From positions 7,812,001-7,876,000 of the forward strand of contig OZ176056.1 in NCBI GenBank assembly GCA_964247055.1: 64,000 nt of DNA. The letters are read 5' to 3'. This DNA is from Paragordius varius. Its lineage: Eukaryota; Animalia; Nematomorpha. This document shows, piece after piece, positions 9,781-51,975 of this stretch; position 1 is the first letter of the stretch; each line of letters opens with the position of its first letter. The notes beneath the pieces were generated by a model. That model searched no databases. It saw only the letters and a list, made by a program, of their open reading frames with translations, and was not told the origin of the DNA. A program made the translations under genes and the position numbers.

Positions 9781-11749
9781 AATTGTTCATTTGGTCTGTA
9801 TTTTGAGGATGGGGTCAGAAAAATTGATTACGTGTTAGTTTATAAACAACCACTCTTTATTTCTGATGAGCACGATGTAAAACGTCAACAAAAGCGCTTT
9901 ATATATGAAAGGAATTTAGAAAAAGAAGGATTACAGATTGAAAAAACTAATCCTAAGGTTGGTCATTCTTATTATATTTTAGGAAAATTCATCGCGATAT
10001 GTCTTTGTCAAAATACATGCCCCTTTCCCCATTTTATGTAAATATGCTCAAATGATGAACATTAAAATGCCGATAAAGGTTTTTATTAACATTTTTTTCT
10101 TTTTCTCACTGATACATAAATTTAAATCAGAGGTTTCCAACCCCCAGTCGTCTGAGATATCATGTGCGGTTGGCGTAAGATTCGGAAACCAAATAAATGA
10201 GATATACACAATTTCAAAATATTCTGATATCTTTGCTAAATTTTTATTTCTTTAAGAATCGATCAGCATTGATATCCAAAAATGGGGGAATTAATAGCAG
10301 TTTTCTTTTTTTAAAATTATTTTACAATGTAGTCTAATAAAATTTATTAAAATTTAGTTTTAATGCGGCCCGCGAAGCTATTTGTGTTGTAGATTCCTGG
10401 CAAAAATCGTATTATATATTTGCTTGCTCAGTTTTTTATTAATTCTTTTTGAAAATTAATTTTTATAACTTATGATTATTTATTTTTTGCAATAATTATA
10501 TCTCCATTTTTTTCAAGCTTTCGAATATTAACTTACTATTTTTAATAAATGGAATTTTTGATATACTGTTTTTATATTTAAACAAATATTTTTTCAATAT
10601 TAATTAGCACTGTTCTTTAAGAAATTAAAACTCAATAGTTTTTAAATATGATGCCACTTTGAAATAAAACGCCTGAATTATTATAAATTTTAAATTAAAA
10701 CTATCAAATTTCACTTTTCAATACTTTTTTTCCTTTTTCTATTAAATTTTATCTTGGAAATTTTTTTTAAAAAAAAGAAGTTGTAAGAATTTATATTTAA
10801 ATTACCAGAATCTTGATATCAAAATTTTTTTTCTTATATATATACCTGAGAGTATAAAAATAAATTATAATATATATATATATATATATACCATTTACAG
10901 TTCAAATTCACCCTTGAACAATTCAAATTCACCTTTAAACAATTGAAATTGACCCTAAAAATAAATTATGTATTTTCGAACTAATATAACTCATTATTAA
11001 TATAAAATATATGTTTATGTTATAGTTTATTATTTTTTCAGTATTATTTTAATTTAAACAAAATTTTATTTTTTAAAATATATAAATATATTGGTAATTT
11101 TTAATCTTAAAAAACATGTTATTTTATTTGAGGGTAAATTTGAATTGTTTAAGGGTGAATTTGAATTGTTTAAGGGTCAATTTGAATTGTTTAAGGGTGA
11201 AATTGAATTGTAAATGGTATATATATATATATATAATATATAATTTATATATATTTTACTTAGGAGGATAGCTTTGAAGTGAATAATAGCACAAACGCCA
11301 TCTCCAATTTTTGCAATAAACATTTCCGAAACCCATTTAAACTGCCCCCGGAATATAAACCGAGGGAAAGACAATTTTTTACATGCCCTTTTAATCTGGA
11401 TTATATTACTAGGTTTTTTTTTCATTATTATAACAACTTTTTATAATTTTGTTTTAAAAATTGAAATATTATAAAATATAAAATTATTCATAAGCAAACC
11501 ATACTTTTTAAACACCTTAATTTATTATTTAACCTATGGTTTTTGGATTCGTAAAATAGGGAATAGCCATGTAAATTGACAACACACTTTATTTATAGTC
11601 GATTATTTGTGATCATATAAAATAAAATACTATATTAGTTTTTTTAACCATTTATGCATTTTAATGTCTATTGTTTTTTTAAAAATCCTATAATTGAATT
11701 AGTCAGCCATAAAGTTTGATAATTTTGGTGTAATTTATATCCTATTTAG

Positions 11750-11781
<32 letters not shown>

Positions 11782-12397
11782 TGCCATTATTAAAAATGTT
11801 TAATATGAGAATTCTAATTCAATCATTTTTACTATAAAAAATATTTGCAATTTTATCCGTTATATATTCCACAAAATGAAAATTTTATTTTGATTTTAAG
11901 CGCTAAATACCATTTACATCTCTAATTCACCCTTGAACATCCAATTTAAATTCACCCTCAAATGAATCATGTATCGTTGAATAGTTAAATTTCCTTATAT
12001 TTTTTACATTTTTAAAATTAATTCGTTTAACCTTAACATAAGACTGAATAGACTCTGTTATAAAAAAATATTTATCTTATGAAAACGCATAAGGATGAAA
12101 TTGTTTGAGGGCAATTTGAGGTTTAAGTGGTATATATTTATAAATATATATACCTACCATTTACAATTCATATTCACCCTTAAACAATTCAATTCACCCA
12201 AAAATAATATTATGTGTTTTCGGGCTAATATACAGCATCATTAATTGAGATATATATCTTAATGGCATATATTATTTTTTCAGTATTATTTTGATTTTAT
12301 ACAAAATTTTACTTTTTAAAAATATAAAAATATAATTTTTTTAATCTTAAAAACACATAATATATTTTAGGTGAATTTGAATTATTCGAAGTTGAAG

Positions 12398-12445
<48 letters not shown>

Positions 12446-15400
12446 TAGATTCTTGATTAGAGATGAATCCACATTTTTTGATAATGCCAAACGGAGTCGC
12501 ATAGTATATGAAATTTTGTCCCGGGCAAAATATGATGTACAAGCCTTAAAATTTGGTTTTTTTTATTTTTACGATATAATATATTAAAACTAATCTAGCT
12601 TGCTTTTTAATTTTCTTTACCAACATTTAAACAAAACCATCCTAATATGATTAAAACACATGACAAAACTTCTCAAATATAAAACAACATTTTTATCATA
12701 TAAATGAAAACTTTAAACTTTAAATAAATTAAAACTATTTTTATACGTTTCATAGGTTTATGCAAACTATTAGCTACTCAAACCTATCTCACAGCTTACC
12801 CACTTCATGATGGTCCCTCCTATTACCACCATTATTATTATTCAATCAAAAATAATTTTATCAAAAACAAAAACAATATAAATGACCAATGGCAAACAAA
12901 ATCAGCTGATACCGCTTATAAAATTGAAAATAAAACAAAGTTGCAACATTCCAAGGAAAAGGAACAAACTTTTTCAATGTTATCACAAGATGTGTGTAAT
13001 GATAAAATATCTAAAACTGGTGTTGACGACCCTTGTTTTAATACATCACCTCCTCTAGAAAGTGATCGACAAGTATTTTTTATTATGTTTTATAGTTTTG
13101 ACAAAAAAATTTTTTCCAGTAAAAATGATACCACATACAGCTCAAATTCACCCTTGAACAATTTAAATTCATCTCAAAACAATTCAAACCTTATAAATGT
13201 ATTATTAAAAAGTACCTATATTTTTATACTGTATTTTGGAAAATTAAATTTCGTTTTTTATTTACATGACACGGAAAAAATGATAGTTTATAACAAAAAG
13301 AAATAATTCATATTAATGATGTGTTTATTATCCCGAAAACACCTGATATATTTTAGGGTGTTTTTGAATTGTTTAAGGGTGAATTTGAGGTGTAAATGGT
13401 ATCACTTCTTGTAAACCCCAATTATGGGTAAAATTCATGAATACTCTCTGTATTATAAACCCTTTCTAACAAAAACGGTATTATGTTTTTTTAATTAGAT
13501 TTTTTTCAATATTTTTATTTTTCAAATAAATAATTATAATTTTCACCAATGTATCATAAAGAAAAATGATTCATTTTGCATTTTTTGTTTTTTTTAATAT
13601 TGTGAGGGTTTTATAACGCCACCAGACTAAGCTACACTTAACTTTGTAGTAAGAATCTTATTTATACATCAGAACAAACAGTCTATTGCTAACTATGAAT
13701 TTCTTAGTTTATTATTCAAGTTATTAGGGGTTCTCTATAAAGCGTTTTTATAAAAAATTAATTATTTGGGCATACCTTTTAGATTCTGTATCGTATATGG
13801 GCTCGTGGTGGTGTGTTTTATATGGAACAACCTATAGCTCTAATAAGGTAAGTTTTTTAATACAATTAAGCAATTATTCCATTTTCCTTTTTATTAGTGC
13901 TAAGTTAAAACACTTTAACATGCATTTTTTGTAATTAATATATGTTTTTTCATGTTTTTTATGACAGAATCTTTATAATTTTCAGTTTAAAAGTTTTTTT
14001 ACAGTTTCCATAATTTCAATTCGTTTGTTATCTAATTATAAAAAGTAGTATATTTTTATCAACTTTTTTAAACAGTCAAACAAAACAATATTTCATGGGG
14101 AAAAGCTTAAATAGACTATAATATTATTATTAATTGTAACTTTTTTTTTGAACAATGTTATAAAAGAAAATCACAAATTTTTTTAGCGGAAAACGCCATC
14201 TTATTGCTTGATAGGAAGTACTATAACTTCTAATTGCAAAGGTAGGCTAAGAGAAATAATCTCCATAATATGTTAAATGTTATAAAAGGCTAAAAAATAT
14301 ATTTTTGATTTTACCTTATATAATTGGTATATTCCCGAGTTGATTATATTTATTTGTACTTGAAAACTCATCCACAAAAGTCAAAAAAAGATATAATATA
14401 TTCCATAAATAATAGTATGTTTTTCTAATTAGCCATCAGTCGCCATTTATATTCACCCTCTAACAGTTTAAATTCACCTTAAAAATAAATTAAGTGTTTT
14501 CGGGCTAATATAACTCATCATTATTAATTATATCATATATTTTTATGGCATAATTTATAATTTTTTCTTATGGAAATTTACAACAAAACTTCATTCATTT
14601 TTTAAAAAAATTTAAAATAATTAAGGTAATTTTTAATCCTAAATTGCACATAATATATTTTAGGTTGATTTTGAATTGTTCAATGGAGAGAATTTGAAGT
14701 GTAAAAAATGGTATAACAATTTGTTTTCAAATATCTTTTTGCCATGTGTGTTTTGTCTTAAATACAGTTTTGTTTTTGATATTTTTAATTTATTTAAATA
14801 TTCGCTTTAACAGAGGCTTAAATATTATCAATAACAATTCCTGGTATAAATCATAATAAAACTATCTACTATGAATAAAAATTTACTTATATATATATAT
14901 ATTGTAATGTAATAGAAAATATTTTGGTGAAAAGATTGCAATTTATTTCGCTTGGTTAGGATTTTATACAGCCATGTTAATTCCTGCCGCCTTTTTTGGG
15001 ATCCTTTGTTTCGTGTATGGGATAGCTACCTTTCATACCTATGTGCCCATGTAAAATAATTTATTTTTTTCCCACGATAAAATTATTTAAAAAAAGTTTC
15101 AAAAAATTTTAAATTAAAAAATTTATAAATACGATCAATCATCAGTTTTTTACTCAATTTTGAATTTTTTTGCATTAATCAATGGAAGAGTTTAATTTTC
15201 AATCGTTGCGCTATAAATGTAATAGAAATATTAACTCCTATATTATGGCACTCAATTATAAATCTAAACCATTTATTATAATCGACAATTCAAAATAAAA
15301 TAATATCATGTATAAAAAATATTAGTCATATAGTTTTTATGTCCTGTTTTTTAAAAAATTTCCAGATAATAAAATTATTTACTGCATAACTTTACTTTTA

Positions 15401-18400
15401 CCAACGAGAATTAGATGTGTAAAATGCCCTTCTTAAAATTTCATAAAAAATTATTATATAACAAAGCTCAGGATATTAATATAATTTTTATTCATATTTT
15501 TAAGTAACATATTTTTTATTATAAAAAATTGTGGTGGTTTTATAAAATAAATTATTAATTGGTTTCAAATATTAATTAAAAAAAGTTTTTTATATAATCA
15601 ATTTTTTTTCCTAAAATTGTCACTATTTAAATATACCATTTACAGTTTAAATCACTATTAAACAATTCAAGTTCACCCTTGAATAATTCAAATTCACCCT
15701 TGAACAATTTAAATTCTCCTTCGAACAATTCAAAACACCCTAAAATAAATTATGTGTTTTTAAGATTATTTTTTTATATTTTTAAAAAAAGAACCTTGTA
15801 TTTAATCAAAATAATAGTGAAAAAATAATAAACTTTGCCATAAAAATATATTTAATTATAATGTTGACTTAAATTTGACCGAAATTTCATAATTTATTTT
15901 TAGGGAGAATTTGAATTGTTCAAGGATAAATTTGAATTGATTTATTTTTAGGGAGAATTTGAATTGTTCAAGGGTGAATTTGAATTGATTTATTCAAGGG
16001 TGAATTTGAATTGTTTAAAGGTGAATTTTTATATTATATCCCTACTAAAATAATAGTTTAGAGTTATGTGATGTGAATGGTGTTGGCAACATTACAATGT
16101 GCCCACTATGTGATGAATTGTGCGATTTTTGGAAACTTTCAGACTCTTGTTTATATACCAAAGTTATCAATTTTCATATACCATTTACAGTTCAATTTCA
16201 TCCTTAAACAATTTAAATTCACCCTTGAACAATTCAAATTCACCCTCAAATAAAATATATGTTTTTTAAGATTAAAAATTACCTATATTTTATATATTTT
16301 TCAACAATAAAAGTTTTGTCTTAATTAAAATAGTGAAAAAATAATAAACTATACCATAAACATATATTTCATATTAATAATGAATTATACTAGTTCGAAA
16401 ACGCATAATTTATTTTTAGGGTGAATTTGAATTGTTCGAAGGTGAATTTGAATTGTTCAAGGGTGAATTTGAATTGTTCGAGAATTTGAATTGTTCAAGG
16501 ATGAATTCGAACTGTAAATGGTATATTTAAAAAAAAATTACTATCTTAATAAATTTTTTTTTAAAATCAAAATTCAGATTTTTTTTAGCATATAAAGCTA
16601 TCTGTAATTTAAAATTTATACAATTTTTAAATAACTTATATGACTATGGCGTTATTTAACATATCAATAAATTTTAATCGTATAATCATTCTTAAAAATA
16701 CTTGGAATCGTATTAAATGGTTAACTTTTTAAAAAAATAACCTATTTTCTTGTTCATCTCAGCTTTATTTAATTTAATTTTACTGATTTTTACCAAACGA
16801 GTAGAATATATATATATTTATATATATATAATTATTTTTGCGAATTTTATAATTTATAAAAATTATTATTTTGTAGTTAACATATCTGTTTGATAACCGT
16901 GCGACTGTAGCCTTCTCCATATTCATGTCTTTTTGGTGTAAGAATTTTAGTTATATTTTAAGGATGAAAATAATTTTTTATGCCCTAAACATTTGTAACA
17001 ATAAAATAAAAAAAACTATAAAATTACTTAATTATATATTTGGATTTTTTTAATCCTATTTGATATGAAAGAAATAAAAATAAAACTATAATATATATCG
17101 GCCGAATTTTATTTTATAAGAGAATGGTATAATAATGATTATTATATAATATATTTTGGTTTTTTGAAATTAATTAACTTGTTTTTCTAAATTTTATATA
17201 AATTAATTTATGAATAAAAAAGTTTGAAAAATATTTTATGGTTCATTTTAATATTGATAATAACCATTTACACTTCTAATTCACCCTTTTTCAATTAAAT
17301 ACCCTAAAAATAATATATGTGTTTTTAGCGGCTAATCTAGCTCATTATTAATATGAAATATTCTTTATGGCATAGTTTATCATTTTTTTCAGACTTATGT
17401 TATGTTAAACAAAATTTCATGCCTTAAAAATATTGAAAAACATATATAGCTAATTTTTAATTTTCAAAAACCTAATAATTTATATTTAGGATTTTTTAAT
17501 TTAGAATTTTGGCGTAAATGTGGCATATTACCTATATGTGGTTTATCATTTTTGATTTAACCTTAAAATATTGGAAAAAGTGAAGTGCATTAGGATTAAC
17601 ACAAAATTAATAACTTACAAGCGCATTGCCTTATTTTAATAAGCTTTCATTCTAATAACCAACTAAACAAACTTTATTTATGTTATGATAATCATTAAGC
17701 TACCCTATTTTTTGGAGCTTTGGAAACGTAGGCAAAACACATTGGCGTGGGCTTGGGACACGAAAGATTTTGAGGAGGAAGAAATGATACGACCCGAATA
17801 TGAACACATTGTAAAAACTGTACGGCGTAATCCGGTAACTGGTCAATTTGAACCATACCTGCCCCTGATAAGTCGAACACTCCGGGTAATGGGAGCCGGG
17901 ATAGCTGTCTTAACTTTCGTAAGTCATCATAAAAATTTTTAAGGATAAAGTATTGTTGCCTCTTAACATTCTAATAAATCAATCCAAAATTAATTAAGAG
18001 TTTCACGGTTCCGTAGTAAAATATAGGGGCCTCCTTCCTCTGGTGAAAAAAAAAGTATCTAAACTGTTTTCAGTGAGCCCCTTGCTTCTTTTCATAACGC
18101 GTTTTTACAATAAACAGATTATATAATAAATTAATTAGCTCATGCTGATTTTATTATAAACATTGCCGATAATATGTAAATAAGGTCCTATTTTCTAGTC
18201 AAACTCGTTTAGATATGATTTTACCTTGTCTCACAAATTTACACGAACATATGGGATATTCTAAGAAGTCCTCATAGTAAACCAAAAACAATAAAAAATT
18301 AATTATTAAATCACAATATTTTCTCAATACGCATCCGTATTAATTCTATTAATATCTGATAATATGTATATAAATAATCATTCTAACTCGAGAAATATTG

Positions 18401-33849: not shown

Positions 33850-36800
33850 TTATTTTGGAGTGATTGATAATGGTGACACCATAAGATTAGGCATGAGCAA
33901 AGTAAGTTCCGGGAAATAATTGATACATTTTTGAAGTTCCGTACTGGTCAATAAATTAAAATTTATTTTGGATAAAATTTGTGCCAAACAACCCAATCGG
34001 CTTATATCATACTTGATCCAATCTATTGCCAAAACAAAAATGTTTGATTCATCTCGAGCCTGATTTGATGAGTTTTCTAACATTTCTATCACATTTTGAA
34101 GCGTAGCATCCCTTACCCACATCGAACGGCTAAATGCTAAAGTATGTATAATAATAGTAATAGTAATTTGCAAATCACCACCCACCCAGTATAAGGATAA
34201 AAACAAAAAGGTGTTGACAGCTATTTTGTTATAAAGATGCGTGTCTATATTATACGCACATTTTTTTGTCGCTAAAATTATCCGAACATATAAAATTAAA
34301 GATGTTATTAATTTACACATGTCTATTCCTAATTTCGCAATCTAAAACAATTTCTTTTAAATATATTTTAAATATAATTCTCTTTACATAAATTATCTAT
34401 CCGTATATTTGTTTTTAAGTAAGTTCCTTATATCTAAAAATTTATTGGAACATATAAACTTGGATTTGGTTCCGTTATTGGATTTGTTTGAACAAAGCCA
34501 CATTGCATCATGTTAGTTTGCGCATTTCTGTTGGGTACATATGGTTGAATATTTCGATTTTGTGGATGAACATAGACTGATTCATTAATAATGCTACTTT
34601 TGTTAGCTTTGTTCATTAACTTATTGGTTTGTTGTGCCGATATTTCATATTGCTGTATAAGATGCCCCAAAACAGGAATTCCCAAAAAATTAACACTATT
34701 TTTCCATAACTCAATATCTTCGGGTGATATATCTATTTTTCCGCCAGAATAAATGAACAATAAAATTTTATCGAATATTGCCGTTTTTATTTGTGAGCTC
34801 GATGGTATAAATATTGTGTCTAAGGGTATGTTTTGTTCCATGCCTTCAGTACATTTTTTATCTGTCAGGCTTGATTTTGTGGATTCCAAAGTGGCTGATA
34901 AATCAGATTTCAATGCATTTGGTACTTCCTCTTGAATTAAATGGCTTTTCCTTTGGTTGGCTAACAAGACACTACTCTGTTTATTCGTGGATTGGGGAAA
35001 CGTTGCGAGGAAAGCATTATTCAAATATGTACTGTATGAGCACACTAGAGATTTATGAACCTTGAATGGTATGCCCTGTATCATTATACGGCCATCAAAA
35101 TTGTCTGTGGTTCTGGTCGTATCTAAACTCAAATGTTCCAAATAATGAATATATTTCCAGGGAGAGGGCTGGTTACCTCCTAAAAGCGTAGAGTCGGAAT
35201 GTAAAGTTTTGTTGATAATCTGTGGACCAACTTCCTTTTGTGGAGAATGGGATAAATTAGTGTGGGGACTTTGTGGCTGGGATAGATTTGGGGTGGTGGC
35301 GGTTTTTATACTACTATCTGTTTTCCCCAAAATAAGCTTCTTTTCAATCATAGTAAAATGGCGCAGAAAATAAGGGATCTTAAATTTGACACAGGCATGT
35401 TTACAAGCTTTAATCTCTTGTTCGGTAAATTTGAAGGTTTCTTCATTCACTAAATCTCTGCTATGAAAAGTTGTCATGATTTTAACAATCAATTGTAGCG
35501 TTTGTGGCGAAACTCGAAAGTCATTTGGAATTGGTATTTCTTGAACTGTTGGATTAGAACATATTATGTTGGCAAACAGCTCACTATTATAAAAATGGAT
35601 TGAAGTATATACATAATATATATATATATATATATATATTTAATAAAACTCTCCTGCACAACAAAGATTTTTATGCATTAGCTGGCCCTGTCATGCTTTG
35701 CTTGATGTAGTTTCACCGATAATTATTCATAATAATTTGCAATAAATAGAGGTAATAAAGATTAAAAATAATGAATAACATATTTAATAAGAGGAATTTT
35801 AATTATTCTTATACGGGTTTTTGCATAGGCTCAAATAATGTTACTCGAAATTGACCATATTTAAACTGTCCCTTATTAAAGATAATATTCATCTATCATT
35901 AGAATTATTTGAGAATTTTCGTTTTACGAAATCATGGTTAAAGTGTTCACACAGCTGGGATAAGGGATATAAAAGTAAATCATTTGTTGTCCCTTTAAAT
36001 GAAAGAATGATATTATAGAAATTCCACAGAAATGTGTTTAACTGAACTCTCTATCACTTCTTAGGTTATTTGAAAATTAACTCCAAAACTACGTCTATTT
36101 TGTATCGCGTCTCAGTTTTTAACCGCTAGACCCCTACCCATAGACCTATATGGAAATGGCGCTGAGCTAAATACTTTGCCATATTTGGAATCATCATTGA
36201 TACCATCGTCTCATGGGTTATTCGAAAAAATAACTCAACACTTAATAATCGTTATATGATGGTGTATTTTTAGGGCATAAAGGCCCCCAAATTAACGAAT
36301 AAAAGACGCCTGACCTTTTTTACCTGGTTACGAGTAATATTTCAAGCTTTTAATAAGCTTATATGACTTAATTTATTTTATGTAAATTAGCTCCAAAACA
36401 ACGCAATTTCTATATAGTGGCACAGTTTTTGGCGGGTAGCCCCTAATCCAGGGGCAGGATAAAAATAGCATTGGGCAAAATTTGTGCCTTTATATGGGAA
36501 ATACTGGAATTATCATGGATTCCATATGATTCTATTAGACTCATAGGTTTTGTGAAATTTTGTCTACAGGCATGCTGTATCGATATAGTGACGCAGTTTT
36601 ACGCGGGTAGCCCCCTAACCAGGGGCGAAACAAAAAAACGCTCGATTAAATTATTTGCCTGAATTCGGGTAACTTCTGGAATCATGATTGATTCCATATG
36701 CTTTCCTGGGATTTTCGAATTACATCCAAACCAAAAAGTCATTCTATGGTGGCGCATTTTTTAGGGCAAGGGCTTCATTAAGGAGTAATTTAATAAACAG

Positions 36801-40106: not shown

Positions 40107-43100
40107 ATGAATGGTACAACTTTACAACAGCAACAGCTAAAACAGAAATATCAAAATTTAACGAAACGTTATTCGGGCAAACTTTCACTGTTTTGGTACG
40201 GAATGACACCGTTAAAGGCATTACTTATATTTTGGTGCTTAGCCATGATTATGGGATTATTGTGTCTAATAAAGTATCAAATACAGCTCCTACCCTCACT
40301 CATCTGGAACAATGCGGAGAAGGATGGTTTTGATAAAAATTCTGTAAGGTACCTACCTTCTCCTGCTTCCGAATATCCTTCCCTATCTTCCTGGTACAAT
40401 TATTTGTTTTCAAACTTCAAATCGAATCAAGCTACCACGTATAAATCAGCATTATTACTCAACAAGTAATTTTAGATTGTTATATATATATATATATATA
40501 TGTTGTTTTATGTGCGAAAAAAAACTTTAAAATTTGACTATTACATTAAACCAAACCGACCACCTTCATGTAAGCCATTTAAATAAGGATATTTATCCAC
40601 ATCATACCTTATTTTAAAAAAGATTAAATTTTATCATTTATAATTGACATTCATAATAAATATCATTATAATTGGTTTTTGGTAACAATTGTTTTATTTT
40701 TGGAATTAGGGAATCAGAAAACCCCGAAATATATTTTAATAACAGTTTTTATCATTATAATATATTGCTATTAAATATTTTTTATGGCATAATTGATAAA
40801 CATTTTCTGCATTGTGTCAATTTTAAACAAATTTCTATTTTTAAGCATATTAAAAAATAAAGGTAAGCCTTGATTTCAAAAGAGCATATTTAATTATTGG
40901 GCTGTTGGAAATGTGGAGTGAATTACAAGAGTGTATTTAAAATGTTTAAGGAGAAATTTACGAAATTTGAGGGTGAATTCAAAACGTTCTAGGGTGAATA
41001 TAACATGCCTAAGGGTGAATTTATATTGTTTAACGGTAAATTTGAATTGTTCAAGACTGAATATTAAATTTTCAAGGGTATATTTAAATTGTTCAAGACT
41101 GAATATTAAATTTTCAAGGGTATATTGAAATTGTTCAAGACTGAATTTTAAATTTTCAAGGGTAAATGGTGTATATAATATAATATATATAAACGATAGT
41201 GAATTTGCTAATAACACATTCTCGTTAAACGGTGAGGATCAATCCCTTACTGAGGAAGACATATTGGAATACAATAAATTAAGCGAAACTCCAATCAATA
41301 ACGACTTATGTTGGATGAATCGAGACGAAGTTTTAAAGTTTGGGGCAATCCAAATGGATAATGTAAACCTCATAAATTACATCAAAACTAATTATATGGA
41401 TTTGCCACAAGACCGAACTATGCCATATAATTTGAAAAATCCCGATATTAAATACCAATCTCAAGTCAAACAAGATATTATTGTGGAGCAATTATTAAAA
41501 AGCAAAGTATTTAATAAAAAGATATAGTTTTTTTTTATTATTAAAATCTTTTCATATTGTATTGAGATATAGTAGGCAATTTATGTTTAATTCTTTTAGA
41601 GGTCTGTTTTTTGGTAAATGATATTGATAACATATAGAATTATATAAGAGAGTCCTCATCCAATCGAAATCGATGGCTAATTACAAGATATCAATATTTT
41701 TGTAATATTTTAAATGAATTCGACTAAGATAAAGTCATAAGAATAATTTTTTCACCGTATACTGCATCGTCGAATAGTATCGCTTTTTGGGATCCAATTT
41801 TTTTAATTTTTATGCGCCATTATTTTTTACAAAAATGCCATTTTACATTGTTTTTTAACGGAATCTCCCGTTGTCAAAATGATGGATTTATTATATTAAA
41901 TGTTTAACTTTAAGATAAATGTCACTATTTTCCTGAATTTTTATATATTATATATTAGACCAATGGGTTCTTTATTGAGGCAGGGGCTCAGGATGGAGAA
42001 TACCTGTCGAATACGCTTTATTTCGAACGTTTTTTGAATTGGACGGGTCTTTTGGTGGAACCATCGCCAAAGCACTATGAAATTCTGAAGGGGAAACGCA
42101 GAAAGGCATATCTAACCAATAGTTGTTTAAGCCCGAAACCATATCCCTTACAGGTAAAAGCTTATCTTAAAAACATTATTAAGTAGTTGTTGGAAAAATT
42201 ATAAAATTTTAACATAAATACATATATCAATAACCAATCCCTTATATGTATTGTATCAAGAAAAATTTATCATAATGTTTAAAGTTTGTGTTATAAGGTA
42301 TAAAAAGGCTATAAATTTTTAAATACAGCATTTTTTGTCCTTTCTGTTGTAATATATGGCATTATTAATAATCATTTTCAGTATACATTTTAATGGCTGC
42401 TTATATGACATAGTGTAGGGCAGGGCTTTCTAAAACTATGGGTCGCGTAGCAAAATTATGGGGTCGCGAGTGATGAAAATACAATATAACATAAAATGTT
42501 TTTTAACTTGTAAAGTTTTGTTATAAATAAAGATAACGATCATCGTAGATAAATATATCATAAAATCTTCTGATTCGGAAAGACTGTTTATACCAGCATT
42601 TCTATTCTAAGTATATTCCCTATATTTATAAAAATAGAAAATGCTGGTTTTGTGATCTGTTTACGGAATATTCAAATCCAAATGTCAAAAAATATAATCA
42701 TTAATAAATGCCACGACAAGAGCTTGGCCATTTTTTTGAATTAGGCCCCCATCGGGCCCACCCCGTGTAAAAATAGGGTTTTTTTTAAATCAGTGGTCCA
42801 CAAAAATCGTGCTTTTGAATTTTCCGGAATACGTGTAGGACATTCGATTTTAAATATGATTTTTTACTTTTTCGATTGCGCCGAACATAGTCGGCCTACT
42901 TTTTTAATTTAGGCTCTCTTTTTACTGGTTTCCCCAGTAAGATGCCATTTTTTTGTAAAAAACAAAATAATTTTTTGTCCAAGGTATGAGACCGTTAAAA
43001 TTCAATGAGGATTCCAGGTATTCCCTGTTAAAAGGCAATTTTAGTCTTGCGTTTTATAAATATTGGCTGTTAGGTGAACGACGCTAAAACTGCGCCACTA

Positions 43101-45069
43101 TTTTAAAATTGCGTTGTTTTGAAGCTAATTTACAGAAATGAAGCCATATGAGCTCATTAAAAGCTTGAAATAGTCGAGCTTTTTTTATTAGCCGTAATTT
43201 GGGGCCTTTATGCCCTAAAAATACCCCTCATATAACGATTATTTAGTGTTGAGGTATTTTTTCGAATAACCCATGAGACGATGGCATAGATGATTCCAAA
43301 AATTTGCCCTCTCAGCGCTTTTCCCATATAGGTCTATGGGCAGGGGTCAAGTTTAAAACTGAGACGCCATACAAAAATGGCGTAGTTTTGTAGCTGATTA
43401 TTAAAACACTTAAAAAGCCATTCGAGTTCAGTTAAACACATTTCTGGGGAATTTGTATAATATCATTCTTTCCTTTAAAAAGGGACCACAAATGATTTAC
43501 TTTTTATATCCCTTGATCCCAGCTGTGTGAACACAATTTCGAAATAGAACTTTCAAAAATGATTTTGTAAAACGAAAATCTTAAAATAAATCCAATGATA
43601 GTTGAATATTAACTTTAATAAGGGACATTTTAAATATGGTCAATTTCGAGTAAACAATATTTCCTATGAAAAAACCCGTAAAAGAATAATTAAAGAGATT
43701 CTTTTTATTAAATATGTTTATTATAATTTTTTATCTCCATTAACTATATTTAATGCAAATTATTGTGAATAATTATCGGTGAGACTACGCCACACCGAAG
43801 CGTGACAGGGCCAGCTAGTATTTTGTATAAATTTACTATGAATCAGAAAATGTTATAAAAATTTAAAAAATGTAGTTTTATTTTTGTCAATTTTTTAAAA
43901 CCTAATCCTGATAAATATTATCAACAAAATTTATAAGTGTTATTTTGAAGAAACTATTATTTTTATTTTATGTTGTTGGGGTCGTTATGAAAACTCGCAA
44001 TCATAAATGGGGTCGGGAACTACAAAAGTTTAAGAAGCCCTGGTGTAGGGCGATTCGGAACACAGTACTGTATGAAAAAAAGAAAGGAAAATATTGTTTA
44101 TTCCATTATGTTGCTTTTTCCATACACTACTGTTGTTGCAAATAGCTTAACTATAGTGTGAAACAAGCAACCGTTAAAATGCATAATGTACTAATATGGC
44201 AGTAATTATATTCAAATTAGGCTGATAAAAAAAAGTTATTAAATCTTTATTTACCATTTACACGTTAGATTCACCCTTAAACGATTCAAATTCACCCTCG
44301 GATAAATATGTGTTTTTAAATTTTAAAAATTACTTATATTATCATATATTTAAAAAACTAAAATTTCATTTAATATTAAAATAATACTGAAAAAAATAGC
44401 TATGCCATAAAGAAATATTTCACATTAATCATGAGTTATACCGAAACACATAATTTATTTTTTCGGGTAAATTTGAATTGTTCAAGGGAAATTTTACCTT
44501 TATATTAGCCCGAAAACACATAATTCATTTTTCAGGGTAAATTTGAATTGTTTAAGGGAAATTTTCCCGGTGAACTCAAAAACGGCACCTAAAGATGTTT
44601 ATTGTTAACTTTGCCAAAATTACTCAAATAATTAAATTTTTTATCCATTTCTAATTATTTATATATGCTTGCATACTATTTGTTGCAAACATAGATTGAT
44701 TTCAACGGACATCAAATCATGGCTGATGGGGTTGAATTATCCAACAATAATAAAATTGCTAAAGTACAATGCTTTCCACTATATTCCCTTTTACTAGCTG
44801 CATTTGGCAGTAATACCTTTCTTTCTGAGGAAACGAAAAAAATTACAATAGATTATTTTAGTTTGGATATAGATGGGCCTGAACTGGAAATATTACAGAC
44901 CATACCATTCGAATTGGTTGATATCCATCTTATTAGTTATGAATTTACACATCATCCCTTCCCTACGGATTGGGTTCATGTTAATAAAACTATAGCTTTC
45001 ATGAAATCCAAAGGATACACCATAGCAAAAGAAACGCTCATAGATTTGATATTTGTTAAGGATTTGTGA
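40107..45069 (+). CDS. Star-like FkbM family (Methyltransf_21) SAM-dependent methyltransferase with N-terminal type II membrane anchor (4 exons, about 411 aa)
   Basis: Exons 40107-40465, 41200-41506, 41959-42153, 44695-45069 with matching phases. Hydrophobic LKALLIFWCLAMIMGLLCLI; motifs GFFIEAGAQDGEYLSNTLYFE..LNWTGLLVEP, VQCFPLYSLLLA and IDYFSLDIDGPELEILQTIPF. Confidence 0.9.
42421..44042. mobile_element. hAT-type non-autonomous element with 8-bp TSD, carrying a Helitron and inserted in a MITE
   Basis: TIRs CAGGGCTTTCTAAAACT / AGTTTAAGAAGCCCTG; exact direct repeat GTGTAGGG at 42413-42420 and 44043-44050. Confidence 0.85.
42617..43818 (+). mobile_element. Non-autonomous Helitron (copy 2, internally deleted)
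   Basis: 5' TCCCTATATTTATAAAAATAG; 3' imperfect hairpin CACACCGAAGCGTG then ACAGGGCCAGCTAG|T. Confidence 0.8.
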
Positions 45070-45505: not shown

Positions 45506-48500
45506 CTAACCTTTTTTGACCCCTGAACGAAGGCTTCTACCAGGGTTTAAGCCAGGTGGGAGTTTAACATTAGTAACAATACCATCAACAGTTGCAAATC
45601 CATCCATACTTGTTTGAATTTGATTCTGATTTTTGTGTAATGTGTTAGATGATGCCTTTTTCTTACCTTTATGTTTGGGCGTGTTTGTAGTTTTTTTTCC
45701 ATCAAACTCCATCATCTCACCCATATTTTCCGTAGCATCAGTAAATGTAGATGTAGTATTTCGTAAGGCTTGATAAACTTTAAGAGCATAAGCTCGACAC
45801 TTTTCATGATCTACTATTGGCCTGGGATAATCCACACCCAAAACGAATCCACACTTTTGAGCTATGGCGGGTGGGCATTGCCAAGGTGCGTGAATATACT
45901 TGTCAGGTAATTGTGTGAAAGAAAAAAAAGAATTTTTAGTCTTTACGGATGGTAAATTTCGTTTATTTGTCGTGTGAGCTAGGGTAAGCCATTGCCTTAC
46001 ATATTGCCCGAGAGGGTCAAATTTTGTGCCTTGGAGCACGGGATTAAAAACGCGAAAGTAGGGGGAAGCATCGGCCCCTGTCCCAGCTACCCATTGCCAA
46101 CCCATGGAATTGTTGGCTAGGTCAGCATCTACGAGCGTATCCCAAAACCAAGCGGCACCCGTGCGCCAATCAACGAGTAAATCTTTGGTTAGGAATGAGG
46201 CCGTTATCATACGGACACGATTATGCATGTAACCTTCATACCTATATATATATATATATATATATACCATTTACAGTTCAAATTCACCCTCGAACAATTC
46301 AAATTCACCCTCGAACAATTCAAATTCACCCTTGAACAATTCAAATATACCCTCGAACAATTCAAATTCACCCTTGAACAATTCAAATTCACCCTTATAC
46401 AATTCAAATTCACCCTTAAACAATTCAAATTCACCCTTATACAATTCAAATTCACCCTTAAACAATTCAAATTCACCCTTGAACAATTCAAATTCACCCT
46501 AAAAATAAATTATGTTGTATTTTCGAACTAATACAATTCATTATTAATATGAAATATATGTTTATGTTATAGTTTATTATTTTACAGTATTATTTTAATT
46601 TAAAAAAAAATCTTTATTTTTTAAAAATATATAAAAATATTGGTAATTTTTAATCTTAAAAAAACATATATTTTATTTGAGGGTGAATTTGAATTGTTCG
46701 AGGGTGAATTTGAATTGTTTAAGGGTGAAATTGAATTGTAAATGGTATATATATGAATAAGGAGCATTTAATTGAAGTAAAAAATGAATGAAGAATTAAT
46801 AGGTAGCAAAAAAAATTAGTTTTTTCAAGTCCCACCTCTAATATATATGCCATATACCTTATAAAATAAGGTGTTAGCAATATAAATATATAAAAAAATT
46901 ACGGTAAAGTAAAAAAATGAAGAATTACCAAAAAAATTTCGAATTAAACTCCTATATCCAAAATTTAATTTCTTTTGTTTTTACTTTATTCCATAAAAAA
47001 GATACTACCATGTATCGAAAATTTTGGGTATAGTTCAATTTAATAAATTTTACGAGAATTCAAATTTATATTTAACATTTTTAAAATTATATCGTAACTC
47101 TTGTACCTTCGTTAAAAATTACATTTAAGTAAAAATATAAATTTTTATTAATATATCAAACTAATTAATAGTTAGAGTTGTTCGCAATGAATGTCCATTT
47201 TACCCCTCATAATATCCTAAATAGAATGAAAAAATTACAATAAAAAATTAAAAAAATGAAATTAATATTTGTCAAGACATACATAGTTTAAGTTAACTAT
47301 AGTATATATCCCATAGCTTACAATAAGCTTTTTCTTAAAATAAATAAATATCGTGACTACACACAATGGGAAATTACAGTAAAAAAGTTGGGATAATTAT
47401 TATCAAACCAATTAATAATAGTTTAAGCTATGTATAATATTTCGCCCTTATAATAAGCCCTTTTAATTGGAAATCTATTAGATTAAAAAATGTACTGAAA
47501 TGATAAAGCAAATATTTTTTCAAAGGTAGCTTTATGTCAGTTTTTTAAACGGTGTTTTTTTACTATAATTTGTCTTTATATCTGCCTACAGTTTAATGTT
47601 AAAGCGCCATCTAAGTTATTTTACCACAACTGTTTCATCCCAGCATCGACTATGGGATATCCCGTTTTCCCATACTTCCAAGCCTCAAGTCTTGATTCAT
47701 ACGTATCTTGTTGTTCATTTTTTGTTTTAAGCCCTCCTTGCTCTAACGTATTTTGGGTAGCCCATTGAAATTTATCGAATTCAGGGCGAAAATTTTGTTC
47801 AGGCAGACCAGGGAAATGATATAACAAATAGTATGAGAATTCACGCCACCCCAACTCAGCAATGTACCTAAACATATAAAAAAAGAGTAAAATACTAGGG
47901 TTAAATAAATGGTATCCATCTAACCTTTTTAAAATGAATAAGTACAGAATGAGTAAGTATACCATTTGCGCTTCAAGTTGCTTAAAATTTTCAAATTTTG
48001 ATTTAACCATAATTTTTGCATTTATTTTTTTATTTTATTATTTATAAACCTAATTTTCTTTATTTATTATATATTTAAACAATAAAAAATTTTCTTCAAA
48101 AACCAATTTCCAATTTAACAAAATTTTAAATGTTCAATGAAAAATTGTAAATGATAACCCAGAAAACTTATATATTTTTAATTACGTGTTAAAATCTTAT
48201 AAATATCCAAAATAATTTGAAGAAATTAATTAAGATATACGGTTTCTCAATGATTAAAAGTTGATAATGATTTTAAATTTATGTTAAATAATATAAAATA
48301 GGTTTAAAACGATAAAATAGATGATTGATATACGATTTAATATATAAAAGTTAAAACCAAAAAAGACAAAGGACTAACTTGATATGTTCAAGGACCAACT
48401 TGAAGTGAAGGACCAACTTGAACTGTTCAAGGACACTCTTGAAGTGCAAATGGTATATATATTGCTAAAATTAGTAATTATTTCCAAATAGGATATGCAG

Positions 48501-49981
48501 CTAATAGAATTATTATTGGCTAATAATAGTAAAAAGTGAAAAAAATAAAAAGCCAATAATACTTCCCTCTGCAGCATATGCTATTTGGCAATAATTAATA
48601 AATTCCTAGCAATGTCTACCTACTCATTGTGTATATATAAAAATTATAATTTTTACATAACCTACTATATTTCATATATTGTAATTTCATTATATGAAAG
48701 AGTTGAGTAATTTTTAATAAACGTTTGTTTGCTTGTTAACTATGTAAATAAACACGCCTCATATAACATCCAAAAAAAGTTTTATTAAAAAAATAATTAA
48801 TTCTTTCACTAACTTAGTAATTCTTTCCCCAACAATATATTTAGTTTACCGTAAGCATGGTAAAAATATCAAACGGTTGATTAAAACATTTTTTTCCGCT
48901 ATTTAAATATTAACAATAATAATGAAAAACTTTTTCCATATACTACTGTTTAACGAAAAAAAAAAATTCATATCTTTCAACAAAAAATATAAAATTAAAA
49001 GAATTTACATTGGAAAACTTTAAAACAGATTATGAATTAATGCGTACAACATTCCCACCTTTCTTTCCCACGTATTTTAAGGTGCTTAGCAAACTCACGT
49101 CCAGCAAAAACCGTGTGCCAAATTTGCCAAGGACCTATTTCGCCGAGCGCAAGAGAGGGCGAAAGTCTTGAAGTTCCCACGGGGGAGAATACATTATCAC
49201 GGGCCGTATCATAAGTCAACACTCGATGATTTAGGAAATCGGCCAATCTTTGACGAGCATTTGCTTCTCCGGGTGTCCATGTAGCTCTAAAACCTGAAGC
49301 CCAATCTGGGTGCCTAGGTAACAAGTTAAGATCCGCTAAAGTATCGATAGAAATAAGTTTGGCTAATTCAGTTTGTAGGTGTTTTGAATTATTATTATTG
49401 TCATGTTTAAAAGCGGGACAATCGTAAAGTTTACGCGCAAATGAACTACTTTGTTGTTGTGCTAACAAATGATTCATACAGGCTCGCCAATATGGCGTAA
49501 AAACTTTGAAATAACTCCCATTTTGCGTTTTGATAACATCAGGTTCAATTAACAACGAAGCATTGTAAACTTTGAAATTAATCCCATGAGTAAGGAGTAT
49601 ATTTTTAATTTTCAACTGTTGAGCCTGATAAAATGGTTCAAAAACGTGATTAACATAAACGGTACCAATGTTGAATAAAGCCTTTTGTTTGCATATTACA
49701 TCTAAAATATGGAGTGGATCTCCTTTTTTGATTAACAAACTAACTTTTTGGGAAGAATTGTCTTCCAAACTTGTTTGTAAAGCCTTTAAGCTGTGATGTA
49801 ACCACCATTTCTGCGCAGCACCAATTGGCCAAGGCATTTTAACCGATTCATCTTGGTAGATGTAAAGACAAAACACATTTTGAGATTCCGTAACGGCGTG
49901 CCATAATCCGGGATTATCGAATAATCGTAAATCTTTTCGAAATAAAAATAGGGAATTCGTTTTGCTGGATAATGCTGCCAT
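45506..49981 (-). CDS. phr: CPD photolyase of bacterial class III/class I type with a C-terminal basic extension (3 exons, about 633 aa)
   Basis: Exons 49981-49059, 47867-47625, 46241-45506 (both introns phase 2). Motifs FRKDLRLFDNPGL, GAAQKWWLHHSLKAL, FKVFTPYWR, WTPGEANA, GTSRLSP.LALGEI, ELGWREF, WKYGKTGYPIVDAGMKQLW.EGYMHNRVRMITASFLTK, WFWDTLVDADLANNSMGWQWVAG.GAD..PYFRVFNP, KFDP.G.YVRQW, LPDKYIHAPW. Confidence 0.93.
46267..46745. mobile_element. 21-bp-repeat MITE with an expanded left arm (about 11 units) in photolyase intron 2
   Basis: ta|CCATTTAC...GTAAATGG|ta; explains the spurious ORFs 46207-46497, 46223-46531 and 46271-46486. Confidence 0.85.
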
Positions 49982-50031: not shown

Positions 50032-51975
50032 ATGAATTTTTTGAACCAATTCATCGAGTACGATCAACGCAATGAATGGAACCGACTTTTTGATGAAATT
50101 CAAGAGAAATCAAACTATAATTATAGCGTAAAGATTGCCGAAGCTTCTACTAATCGAGAACGAAATCGTTACACAAATGTCATACCCTATGATCACAATA
50201 GAGTCCGGTTAAATATTACATCTTCTATTTCGTGTCCACAGTTACAAGCTTTAAATACTAACAACATTAGCAACAATGGTAAATTAAATTCAGTAACGCC
50301 ACAAAATAATGTATTGCTCATGAAACGGAACAAAAAATCAAAATGGATTTTTCGTAATAAACATACCAATTTGCTTTCTCGTCGATTTAATAACAATAAT
50401 AATACTGTTAACAAAAATAATGATTTATACTCATGCTCTACGGGTTTATCACGTCCTAACGATTATATCAATGCAAGTTTTTTGCCGCTCAAATTTTGTA
50501 CTTTTGAAGATTCTCCCAAATCACCCAATGCTAATCACAATTACAGTGAAAATTTAATTGAAGGTCAAAGCATAACGACCGATTCGTATATTTTGACCCA
50601 AGGACCATTGGAAAAAACTGTAGCACATTTTTGGCAAATGGTATGGCAATATAAATCATCCATCATAGTTATGCTAAATAAGATTTATGAAGGTAACTCT
50701 GGTAAAATGAAGTGTTTCCCCTACTTTCCTGGATGCTTTGACGATGATTCATGCAAAATGTTTCCGTTCACCACCAATTCTGATGAACAGAATAAGAAAC
50801 CAGATATTTTAGAAATTGATGGATGTAAATTACGCGTTAAACTGCTGGACCGTAAAATATACCCCGATTTTATCATATCTACGTTGGAGATTTTAGATAA
50901 ATCCGCATTAGCTTCGCAAACAAATAGCAGTGCGTGTCGGACCATATTTCATTATCAGTATACGTCATGGCCCGATTTTGGGGTTCCTCGTGATCCCGAT
51001 TCTTTCATACAATTCATGGCAATTGTAAAGAAAAAACAGGCAGATTTGCGCTCTTCACAAATTTTACTCGATAAGGATTCCGAGGGCATCCACATCAGAA
51101 TGAATCTCATTGAAAATAATGGCATTGTCGCTAATTCTCATAAGAATGTGTTATCAAGTACCCATGATCATTTTCAATTCCCTACAGTTGTAACAAAAGA
51201 AACCCCTATAAAACTTTCCAAACATAAGACTACAAAAAAATGTGTACCCACTTCACAAACATTTGATATAAATGATACCATAATTAACAAACCTGGAGGT
51301 AAAATAACAAATAGTAAACTCTCTCCAATCATTATTCACTGTAGTGCTGGTATCGGACGAACTGGTACATTTTGCCTTATAGACTGTGTTCTTCATTTGC
51401 TCAATATTGATATTAGTTTATATGAACGACAAGGAAAAAATTCATTGCGTGAAAATATTGATCATACATTGTTTTACGAAAAAGATACCTCCATTGAATC
51501 ATTATCGCAAAAAAGGAGTGAAAGTTTTACATCAGTAAGCCATGACAATACATATTCCTTAATAGATTACATTATCAAACGACAAAATAACATTGAACGG
51601 CTTAATGATGTGAATATTCCGCTCCTTTTATGCGAAATGCGTAAGTATCGTACAGGTCTTATCCAAACGCCAGATCAATTGCGATTTTGTTACGTTGTTT
51701 TAATACGTATATTGGACTGGTGGATTAGGGAACAAAATCATTCCAACATCGAATATATAGATTCGGAAAGAAATGTATCTTCTGCATTTCCTTGTGACTC
51801 TATCATTAAGGAAAATGACTCATTTTATAAATATAATGATAACTTTCCGTCCTTAACACCAATAACAATTGATACAGAAAACAAAAATAATGTTATTAAA
51901 CTTAATTCGTCAACATATAATCAGAATCGAACTAACACTCCATCCTATAACATTAATATTGAGACTTCTCTATAA
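50032..51975 (+). CDS. PTPN1/2: Non-receptor protein tyrosine phosphatase, PTP1B/TC-PTP (Ptp61F)-like, single coding exon, 647 aa
   Basis: N-terminus resembles PTP1B (FIEYDQRNEWNRLFDEI..NRERNRYTNVIPYDHNRVRL); DYINAS, YILTQGP, HFWQMVW, KCFPYFP, WPDFGVP, IHCSAGIGRTGTF and EMRKYRTGLIQTPDQLRFCY are all intact. Confidence 0.93.
   Translation: MNFLNQFIEYDQRNEWNRLFDEIQEKSNYNYSVKIAEASTNRERNRYTNVIPYDHNRVRLNITSSISCPQLQALNTNNISNNGKLNSVTPQNNVLLMKRNKKSKWIFRNKHTNLLSRRFNNNNNTVNKNNDLYSCSTGLSRPNDYINASFLPLKFCTFEDSPKSPNANHNYSENLIEGQSITTDSYILTQGPLEKTVAHFWQMVWQYKSSIIVMLNKIYEGNSGKMKCFPYFPGCFDDDSCKMFPFTTNSDEQNKKPDILEIDGCKLRVKLLDRKIYPDFIISTLEILDKSALASQTNSSACRTIFHYQYTSWPDFGVPRDPDSFIQFMAIVKKKQADLRSSQILLDKDSEGIHIRMNLIENNGIVANSHKNVLSSTHDHFQFPTVVTKETPIKLSKHKTTKKCVPTSQTFDINDTIINKPGGKITNSKLSPIIIHCSAGIGRTGTFCLIDCVLHLLNIDISLYERQGKNSLRENIDHTLFYEKDTSIESLSQKRSESFTSVSHDNTYSLIDYIIKRQNNIERLNDVNIPLLLCEMRKYRTGLIQTPDQLRFCYVVLIRILDWWIREQNHSNIEYIDSERNVSSAFPCDSIIKENDSFYKYNDNFPSLTPITIDTENKNNVIKLNSSTYNQNRTNTPSYNINIETSL

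Follow-up and report, generated by a model that had tools for sequence, protein, structure and literature searches.

A predicted class III (PhrA-type) CPD photolyase gene with two introns in the chromosome of the horsehair worm Paragordius varius, a candidate for horizontal transfer from a bacterium

Introduction

Class III cyclobutane pyrimidine dimer (CPD) photolyases are considered to be enzymes of bacteria. The horsehair worm Paragordius varius belongs to Nematomorpha, a phylum in which many conserved animal genes are reported to be lost. Here we describe a gene of this worm, located on the minus strand (49981-45506) of a 64,000-nt stretch of contig OZ176056.1 (the window, to which all coordinates refer), that is predicted to encode a class III CPD photolyase. 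The evidence as a whole is best explained by an intact host gene that was most likely transferred from a bacterium, an account that we hold to be probable rather than secure.

The reference class III CPD photolyase is PhrA from Agrobacterium (PMC3204975). In Metazoa, sequences of this type ('CPDIII') are very rare, and contamination or horizontal gene transfer (HGT) was suspected by Deppisch et al. 2022 (PMC9498864). The animal entries on record come from Trichoplax (XP_002108560.1), Lepeophtheirus (XP_040565695.1), Nymphon (KAG1657147.1) and Biomphalaria (XP_013089589.1), the last of which is a fragment (PMC9498864 and its supplement). The plant cryptochrome-like (PCRY-like) proteins are defined by the motifs pl1 (VGLR), pl2 (WRDLAY) and pl3 (MWQNxG), with pl3 occurring in 97% of the members and absent from the rest of the cryptochrome/photolyase family (PMC9498864). 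Literature searches for photolyase with Nematomorpha, and for horsehair worm with HGT, found no account of the present gene.

Like Agrobacterium PhrA (solved structure 4U63), the worm protein has a two-domain architecture, the motifs of the pocket for flavin adenine dinucleotide (FAD) and CPD, and a tryptophan triad. Unlike PhrA, it is encoded by a gene with two spliceosomal-type introns, carries loop insertions of ~13, 18 and 20 aa and an 81-aa Lys-rich tail, and falls in a Legionella/Rickettsiales-like class III subgroup, apart from the free-living alphaproteobacterial sequences. Its nearest neighbours in careful trees are photolyases of uncultured Legionellales/Rickettsiales-like bacteria (P0001, P0004, P0002, P0396, P0438, P0444 and P0385) and of Legionella dresdenensis, L. 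shakespearei and L. waltersii. P0004 shares signature motifs with the worm protein and 64-68% identity over exons 2 and 3. Unlike the worm gene, these neighbours are intronless, encode 451-483 aa and lie in compact bacterial contexts.

Class III-type proteins from two ichthyosporeans and a marine protist (Chromosphaera P0150, Sphaerothecum P0155 and MMETSP P0288/P0399) occupy the same broad part of the tree as the worm protein and have insertions in the same two loops. They differ from it by a 40-50-aa N-terminal extension, insertions of 4 aa and 2 aa and the motifs DAAM, NRCRMI and TQS, and are 36-37% identical to it over exon 1. The animal CPDIII entries, class III-type like the worm gene, were compared by description and by eye, outside the trees. 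The Trichoplax protein also has a Lys-rich C-terminal tail but, by eye, has lost MHNR and WQW, both of which the worm protein keeps. The worm gene adds to a known enzyme class a member from an unusual host and is certainly chromosomal, in contrast to the animal entries ascribed to possible contamination (PMC9498864).

Gene structure and chromosomal integration

Three long minus-strand open reading frames (ORFs; 49037-49981, 47621-48010 and 45506-46270) underlie the photolyase gene. The spliced coding sequence comprises 3 exons, 1902 nt and 633 codons and has no internal stop codons:

49059..49981, minus strand: exon 1, 307 codons plus 2 nt, with the start codon ATG at 49981-49979; encodes the N-terminal alpha/beta photolyase domain and the beginning of the helical domain
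47868..49058, minus strand: intron 1, 1191 nt, GT-AG, phase 2, 22% G+C; donor AAAG|GTGGGA
47625..47867, minus strand: exon 2, 243 nt; encodes the beginning of the FAD-binding domain, including the equivalents of E274/W277 and W306 (E. coli photolyase numbering) and an insert of ~18 aa
46242..47624, minus strand: intron 2, 1383 nt, GT-AG, phase 2, 23% G+C
45506..46241, minus strand: exon 3, 244 codons plus stop codon TAG at 45508-45506; FAD/CPD pocket (MHNRVRM, DADLANN, WQW) and C-terminal tail

Exon 1 matches the Pfam family PF00875 (DNA_photolyase, 1.9e-36), and exons 2 and 3 match PF03441 (FAD_binding_7, 8.6e-20 and 1.1e-53, respectively), in each case above the gathering score. This order, an N-terminal DNA_photolyase domain followed by FAD_binding_7, is the architecture of the cryptochrome/photolyase family. 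The G+C content is 38-42% in the exons, 22-23% in the introns and ~27% in the whole window.

The codons split at the junctions are AG|G (Arg, intron 1) and TG|G (Trp, intron 2). At the first junction the spliced product, KERYIAELGWREF, aligns without gaps to the bacterial MERYLAELGWREF, and excision of intron 1 carries the alignment without a gap through KE-R-YIAELGWREF. The product of the second junction, QLWYEGYMHNR, likewise shows a gap-free alignment to the bacterial ELWHTGYMHNR. This restored colinearity with bacterial homologues at both junctions is the best support here for the predicted splice sites.

Other splicing options were considered and rejected. An intron 1 donor at 49099 (GGAC|GTGAGT) is nearer the consensus yet has the wrong phase, whereas AAAG|GTGGGA at 49059 satisfies both frame and homology. 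A 22-nt micro-intron in exon 3 (GTAAGG...CCTAG) encodes the conserved VRQWL, and its excision runs into a stop codon. A small 48-nt GT-AG segment in the same exon is in frame, but its excision would cost the conserved LPDK.

Intron 2 carries a host repeat that resembles a miniature inverted-repeat transposable element (MITE):

46253..46759, no strand assigned: foldback (MITE-like) host repeat, 507 nt, in the 3' third of intron 2, ending ~10 nt from the exon 3 acceptor

The two arms of this element (46253-46339 and 46673-46759) are 87 nt each, inverted, 90% complementary and built from 21-nt tandem units. At least nine further copies are present in the window with identities of up to 91%, for example at 10896-11190 (91%), 16176-16531 (87%) and 44269-44558; the local repeat comparison used pieces without 47113-47149, which lies within intron 2. 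Intron 1 contains just a weak 72% fragment of the element. The initial annotation had placed host MITEs in both introns, which holds for intron 2 and not for intron 1. The photolyase exons have no second copy within the window.

Elsewhere in the window, copies of the foldback element, recognizable as inverted arrays of 21-nt units around an AT-rich core, are found at 10870-17483, 40919-41191 and 44240-44558 and are densest at 10.9-17.5 kb.

On the other side of the photolyase start, a divergent plus-strand ORF (50032-51975) is arranged head-to-head with the gene. It is a single ORF of 647 aa with Asn-rich inserts. Among solved structures, human PTPN2 and PTPN1 are its best relatives. Since the two start codons are 50 bp apart, the photolyase and the PTPN1/2-like gene must have a very short common bidirectional promoter region or overlapping 5' ends.

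Thus, the photolyase gene is a physical part of the animal chromosome. Its integration is certain because introns split the gene, intron 2 carries a host repeat and animal-type genes flank it, in agreement with the integrated and intronized gene that had been proposed initially.

The encoded protein departs from its bacterial homologues at several places. Exon 1 has an Asn-rich loop insertion of ~13 aa and exon 2 a loop insertion of ~18 aa (alignments to 4U63 and 1IQR). Two further departures lie in exon 3:

45914..45985, minus strand: in-frame insert, 72 nt, 24 aa where homologues have ~4 aa (PELA)
45509..45751, minus strand: C-terminal extension, 81 aa, Lys-rich (KHKGKKKA), absent from bacterial homologues; the PhrA alignment stops at exon-3 residue 163

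Pfam and Protein Data Bank (PDB) matches fall into two stretches on either side of the 72-nt insert. The insert itself is intron-like (GTAAAG, then a long T-run) but stays open and has no usable acceptor; it could be a former intron that was retained or exonised. As a scale for the C-terminal extension, we estimate that an open stretch of 113 codons at ~30% G+C would arise by chance with a probability of ~1e-4. The KHKGKKKA stretch in this tail is a possible nuclear localisation signal.

Assignment to class III

To assign the class, each exon was compared with all solved structures and the bits were summed over the three exons. PhrA (4U63) was the top structure for every exon, with 139.5, 52.4 and 161.7 bits for exons 1, 2 and 3 (E 1.2e-39 for exon 1 and 2.2e-46 for exon 3). 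The runners-up were AtCRY1 for exon 1 (83.8 bits), the Thermus class I enzyme for exon 2 (47.0 bits) and the E. coli class I enzyme for exon 3 (144.6 bits; 3.6e-41 against the structure 1DNP). In the sums, plant cryptochrome CRY2 reached ~228 bits and E. coli class I ~221 bits, leaving PhrA in the lead by ~125 bits, and plant cryptochromes trailed PhrA by 45-55 bits on exons 1 and 3. Class II structures gave no match to the exons at E 0.001 or better.

The NCBIfam collection has no class III model, and the signal was divided between its plant cryptochrome and class I models, with scores that are plain sums over exon pieces and remain below the cut-offs. These were 112.5 + 30.9 + 123.1 bits for the plant cryptochrome model TIGR02766 (cut-off 603.85), 79.6 + 38.8 + 163.4 bits for the class I model NF007955 (PRK10674; cut-off 506) and 104.8 + 50.5 + 115.2 bits for TIGR03556, the 8-hydroxy-5-deazaflavin (8-HDF) type (cut-off 884.6).

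None of the three PCRY-like motifs (VGLR, WRDLAY and MWQNxG) occurs in the 633-aa model, which has WREFSY and MGWQWVAG at the equivalent places. A PCRY-like or plant cryptochrome origin, which the initial annotation had offered as the alternative, is rejected because the signature motifs are missing, the residue facing FAD N5 is Asn and not Asp, and plant cryptochromes score far below PhrA. The motifs on which that annotation relied (GAAQKWWLHHSL, WTPGEA and WFWDTLVDADLANNSMGWQWVAGTGADASPYFRVFNP) are all present in the translation, and its class III/class I hallmarks are borne out and sharpened here to class III. By these comparisons, the predicted protein is a class III (PhrA-type) CPD photolyase. 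In the trees described below, which are not rooted with class I or plant cryptochrome sequences, its nesting among proteins retrieved with class III seeds is compatible with this class.

Relatives in sequence databases

A word-index search with exon 1 returned photolyases only, with 34-42% identity, and the named matches belonged to Paracaedibacteraceae, Legionella, Tatlockia, Rhodospirillales and similar bacteria. An exhaustive search of 1.84 billion representatives revealed no relative above 46% identity, and a scan of JGI metagenome contigs none above 44%. The best matches were all bacterial; their identity to the worm protein is ~40% across exon 1 and reaches 53-54% across 462-474 trimmed alignment columns.

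The top 150 matches of the exhaustive search include two holozoan protists, Chromosphaera perkinsii (6.3e-37) and Sphaerothecum destruens. A third eukaryotic class III-like sequence is P0288/P0399, which has MMETSP transcript members. An alien-index-style difference from the E-values of the exhaustive search, in line with the check proposed earlier, is ~15 between the best bacterial match (2.2e-43) and the best known eukaryotic match. The same difference against metazoans is at least ~33, provided that no unnamed match in the top 150 is metazoan. A search seeded with the Chromosphaera protein found no further eukaryotes, and a profile of the eukaryotic clade plus the three worm exons retrieved, after its own seeds, only bacteria. 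None of the animal CPDIII entries was among the best-scoring proteins with known source names, most matches carrying no name.

The contigs of the nearest sequences show plainly bacterial gene contexts. Among species-representative genomes, the best named relatives of the neighbour group are an uncultured Rickettsiales and Legionella shakespearei, L. dresdenensis and L. waltersii.

Some of these contigs have features of their own. On the bacterial contig L003 (2731-4134), a FYVE-domain protein adjoins the photolyase P0444, a near neighbour of the worm protein. FYVE domains are eukaryote-like and typically occur in effectors of intracellular bacteria. The long-branched photolyase P0171 (contigs L087 and L086) has a clearly bacterial context with MetRS, RnfB-like and Nth genes. 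Its copy in GCA_013573075.1 (contig JACCEA012267188.1) is likely to come from a symbiont or contaminant of a probably eukaryotic assembly.

Phylogenetic placement and origin

Trees were inferred in IQ-TREE under LG+C20+F+G4 with posterior mean site frequencies (PMSF) from PhrA-type matches only, with no outgroup. The worm gene was placed as follows (pairs of branch supports given after each placement):

82 rows: inside an all-bacterial set of 19 rows; 96/86
46 rows, three very long bacterial rows excluded: in an 8-row set, nested in an 18-row set with four Legionellaceae, nested in a 31-row set; 81/90, 89/96 and 93/87, respectively
49 rows, long rows restored: in a Legionella-like set of 21-22 rows; 72/84 and 73/93

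The three eukaryotes (the ichthyosporeans and the MMETSP protist), the only eukaryotic class III group sampled, formed their own clade in every careful tree, with supports from 100/97 to 100/99. In the 46-row tree, where the nested bacterial supports are moderate, this clade lies outside the 31-row set that holds the worm gene, and both are contained in a 40-row clade (99/96). The 40-row clade leaves out Ferrovibrio, Nitrospirillum, Oceanicaulis, a metagenome-assembled genome of Verrucomicrobiia, Arthrobacter and the bacterial P0125. Its named bacteria are Legionellaceae, Rickettsiales, Paracaedibacteraceae, Bodocaedibacter and Parachlamydiaceae, all of which live inside eukaryotic cells. This named membership, confined to intracellular bacteria, suggests repeated exchange in that setting.

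The union of the worm gene with the eukaryotic clade was examined by the approximately unbiased (AU) test, with differences in log-likelihood (lnL):

46 rows: -20.0 lnL, p 0.009, rejected
49 rows: -29.6 lnL, p 0.126, not rejected
82 rows: +7.4 lnL under the full C20 mixture and -17.3 under PMSF, p 0.56, not rejected

The history with the better support is an independent acquisition from a bacterium, which, on the trees and characters given here, we regard as rather likely. In no tree is the worm gene strongly nested in a eukaryotic clade. The bootstrap trees never unite it with the eukaryotic clade (0/1000), whereas it groups with five bacterial sequences in 698 of the 1000. Signature characters of the protein are mixed and lean bacterial. 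The motifs PWP[IM]GAAQ[KR]WW, DAGM, GYMHNRVRMI, DADLANNS and NPVLQG are common to the worm protein and its bacterial neighbours, and the N-terminal extension, 4-aa insertion and 2-aa insertion of the eukaryotic clade are absent from it.

The main competing explanation is an old eukaryotic (holozoan) gene, which would have been acquired once early, kept in ichthyosporeans, the worm and a few animals, and lost almost everywhere else. Class III-like proteins of Chromosphaera perkinsii, Sphaerothecum destruens and the MMETSP protist are indeed among the top matches and in the same tree region, and sporadic class III sequences from Trichoplax, Nymphon, Lepeophtheirus and Biomphalaria are documented (PMC9498864). 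The following points weigh against a bacterial origin or limit how firmly it can be stated. The union with the eukaryotic clade is left unrejected on two of the three data sets. FastTree was unstable, placing the worm gene with the ichthyosporeans in one run (support 63) and with six bacterial sequences in another (92). Like the eukaryotic clade, the worm protein has GTGADASPYF, reads EP[DE] instead of EPW and carries insertions in the same two loops. The worm branch, at 0.86-0.97, is long compared with a median of ~0.48, and its placement is sensitive to sampling and model. The trees leave out plant cryptochromes, class I enzymes, PCRY-like proteins, the other animal class III sequences and orthologues from related animals. 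G+C at third codon positions (GC3) is 0.33 in the photolyase, 0.23-0.34 in neighbouring ORFs and 0.26-0.56 in the bacterial relatives measured; this value fits the host and AT-rich candidate donors alike, so the age of a transfer is not datable from GC3. Finally, the photolyase stretch is contained in 8 sequencing runs from 5 studies, none of which is recorded as RNA.

Even so, we consider descent from an old holozoan gene unlikely. The branch that joins the worm gene to the eukaryotic clade in the constrained 82-row tree has a length of only 0.009, and two other long bacterial rows are drawn into the group as well, a long-branch pattern. The union is rejected on the 46 rows that lack those rows. 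The three indels that define the eukaryotic clade are missing from the worm protein, the combined profile leads only to bacteria beyond its own seeds, and very many independent losses would be needed. Thus, a bacterial origin is favoured but not proven, and 'HGT candidate', the term used in the initial annotation, is of the right strength.

For a bacterial origin, we infer the following course. The donor would have been a bacterium of the Legionellales/Rickettsiales-like intracellular set, and the recipient an ancestor of the worm. After the transfer, the gene would have gained two long introns, one of which was later invaded by the host foldback element. It would also have acquired the three loop insertions and a eukaryote-style tail, and its sequence would have diverged fast.

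Active site, proposed function and other alternatives

In the alignments, equivalents of E. coli photolyase residues E274, W277, W306, N341, M345, W359, N378, W382 and W384 are all present in the worm protein. They lie in AELGWREF (E274/W277), FDKFQW (W306), MHNRVRM (N341/M345), VDW (W359), DADLANN (N378) and WQW (W382/W384). The segments AELGWREF, YMHNRVRM and DADLANNSMGWQW align with the FAD-N5 Asn and the CPD-contact positions. The residue facing FAD N5 is Asn, aligned to E. coli N378, as had been claimed from the sequence earlier. The tryptophan electron-transfer triad (FDKFQW, VDW and GWQW) is complete. This residue set is the full complement expected for a working CPD photolyase, and the gene is apparently functional.

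Activity and mode of action are predicted here from homology, and expression and localisation are likewise inferred. FAD would be held in the C-terminal helical domain, and blue or near-UV light would excite FADH-. An electron would then pass to a flipped-out CPD in the conserved Glu/Trp/Asn/Met/Trp pocket, the dimer would split and the electron would return, with the Trp triad re-reducing the flavin. The Lys-rich tail probably directs the protein to the nucleus.

It is improbable, in our view, that the protein has lost its repair role and serves instead as a cryptochrome-like light sensor or regulator. Cryptochromes typically signal through C-terminal tails, and plant cryptochromes arose from class III-like ancestors. 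The long divergent branch, the added 81-aa tail, the three loop insertions and the change of the SPHLHFGEISP motif to SPSLALGEIGP would fit such a role. The loss of MHNR and WQW, seen by eye in the class III-like protein of Trichoplax, indicates that such drift does occur in animals. In contrast, all mappable CPD-contact and catalytic residues are retained in the worm protein, with Asn and not Asp at the N5 position. The altered motif is tolerated in an active enzyme, since E. coli photolyase has YLALG at this position.

Still less probable is that the gene lacks function and persists as a silent or decaying remnant of a transfer. The odd 72-nt intron-like insert in exon 3 and the lack of RNA records among the 8 runs would be in line with decay. 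However, 633 codons remain open over three exons in DNA of ~30% G+C, the protein is 53% identical to bacterial homologues over 474 columns, all key residues remain in place, and the splice sites are precise.

Bacterial contamination or an assembly chimera, suggested by the bacterial nearest relatives, is effectively refuted by two long AT-rich GT-AG introns that interrupt conserved domains exactly where the homologues run continuous, by the recurrence of the intron 2 repeat in the window and by animal-type genes flanking the photolyase on the same sequence.

If expressed and active, the host-encoded class III photolyase would be a clear-cut example of a DNA-repair enzyme of a bacterial class at work in an animal. 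Its region of the tree comprises Legionella, Rickettsiales, Holosporales-type bacteria and Parachlamydiaceae together with two separate eukaryotic lineages, a composition that makes the enzyme useful as a marker of gene traffic between intracellular bacteria and eukaryotic hosts. A wider scenario, possible but doubtful, is that this lineage rebuilt its whole photoreactivation kit from intracellular bacteria. The class III CPD photolyase and an iron-sulphur (FeS) (6-4) photolyase, a pair like the PhrA and PhrB of Agrobacterium, would each have gained introns and a nuclear-targeting stretch and would have replaced the class II and (6-4) enzymes that are usual in animals.

Neighbouring genes and other features

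Downstream of the photolyase and convergent with it lies a plus-strand ORF (44719-45069), the stop codons being 436 bp apart. Its match to the FkbM-type methyltransferase domain (PF05050, 3.8e-08) is confined to the C-terminal half of that domain. No FkbM gene adjoins the photolyase in the bacterial contexts read.

Further away, adjoining minus-strand ORFs at 33850-35492 have BACK and BTB domains and are probably exons of one Kelch-like/BTB gene.

The hexamer CAGCTG is absent from the photolyase exons and from the PTPN1/2-like ORF and is uninformative for dating. It occurs four times in the 64 kb (12903, 35952, 43520 and 57461), which we estimate to be about the number expected by chance at this base composition.

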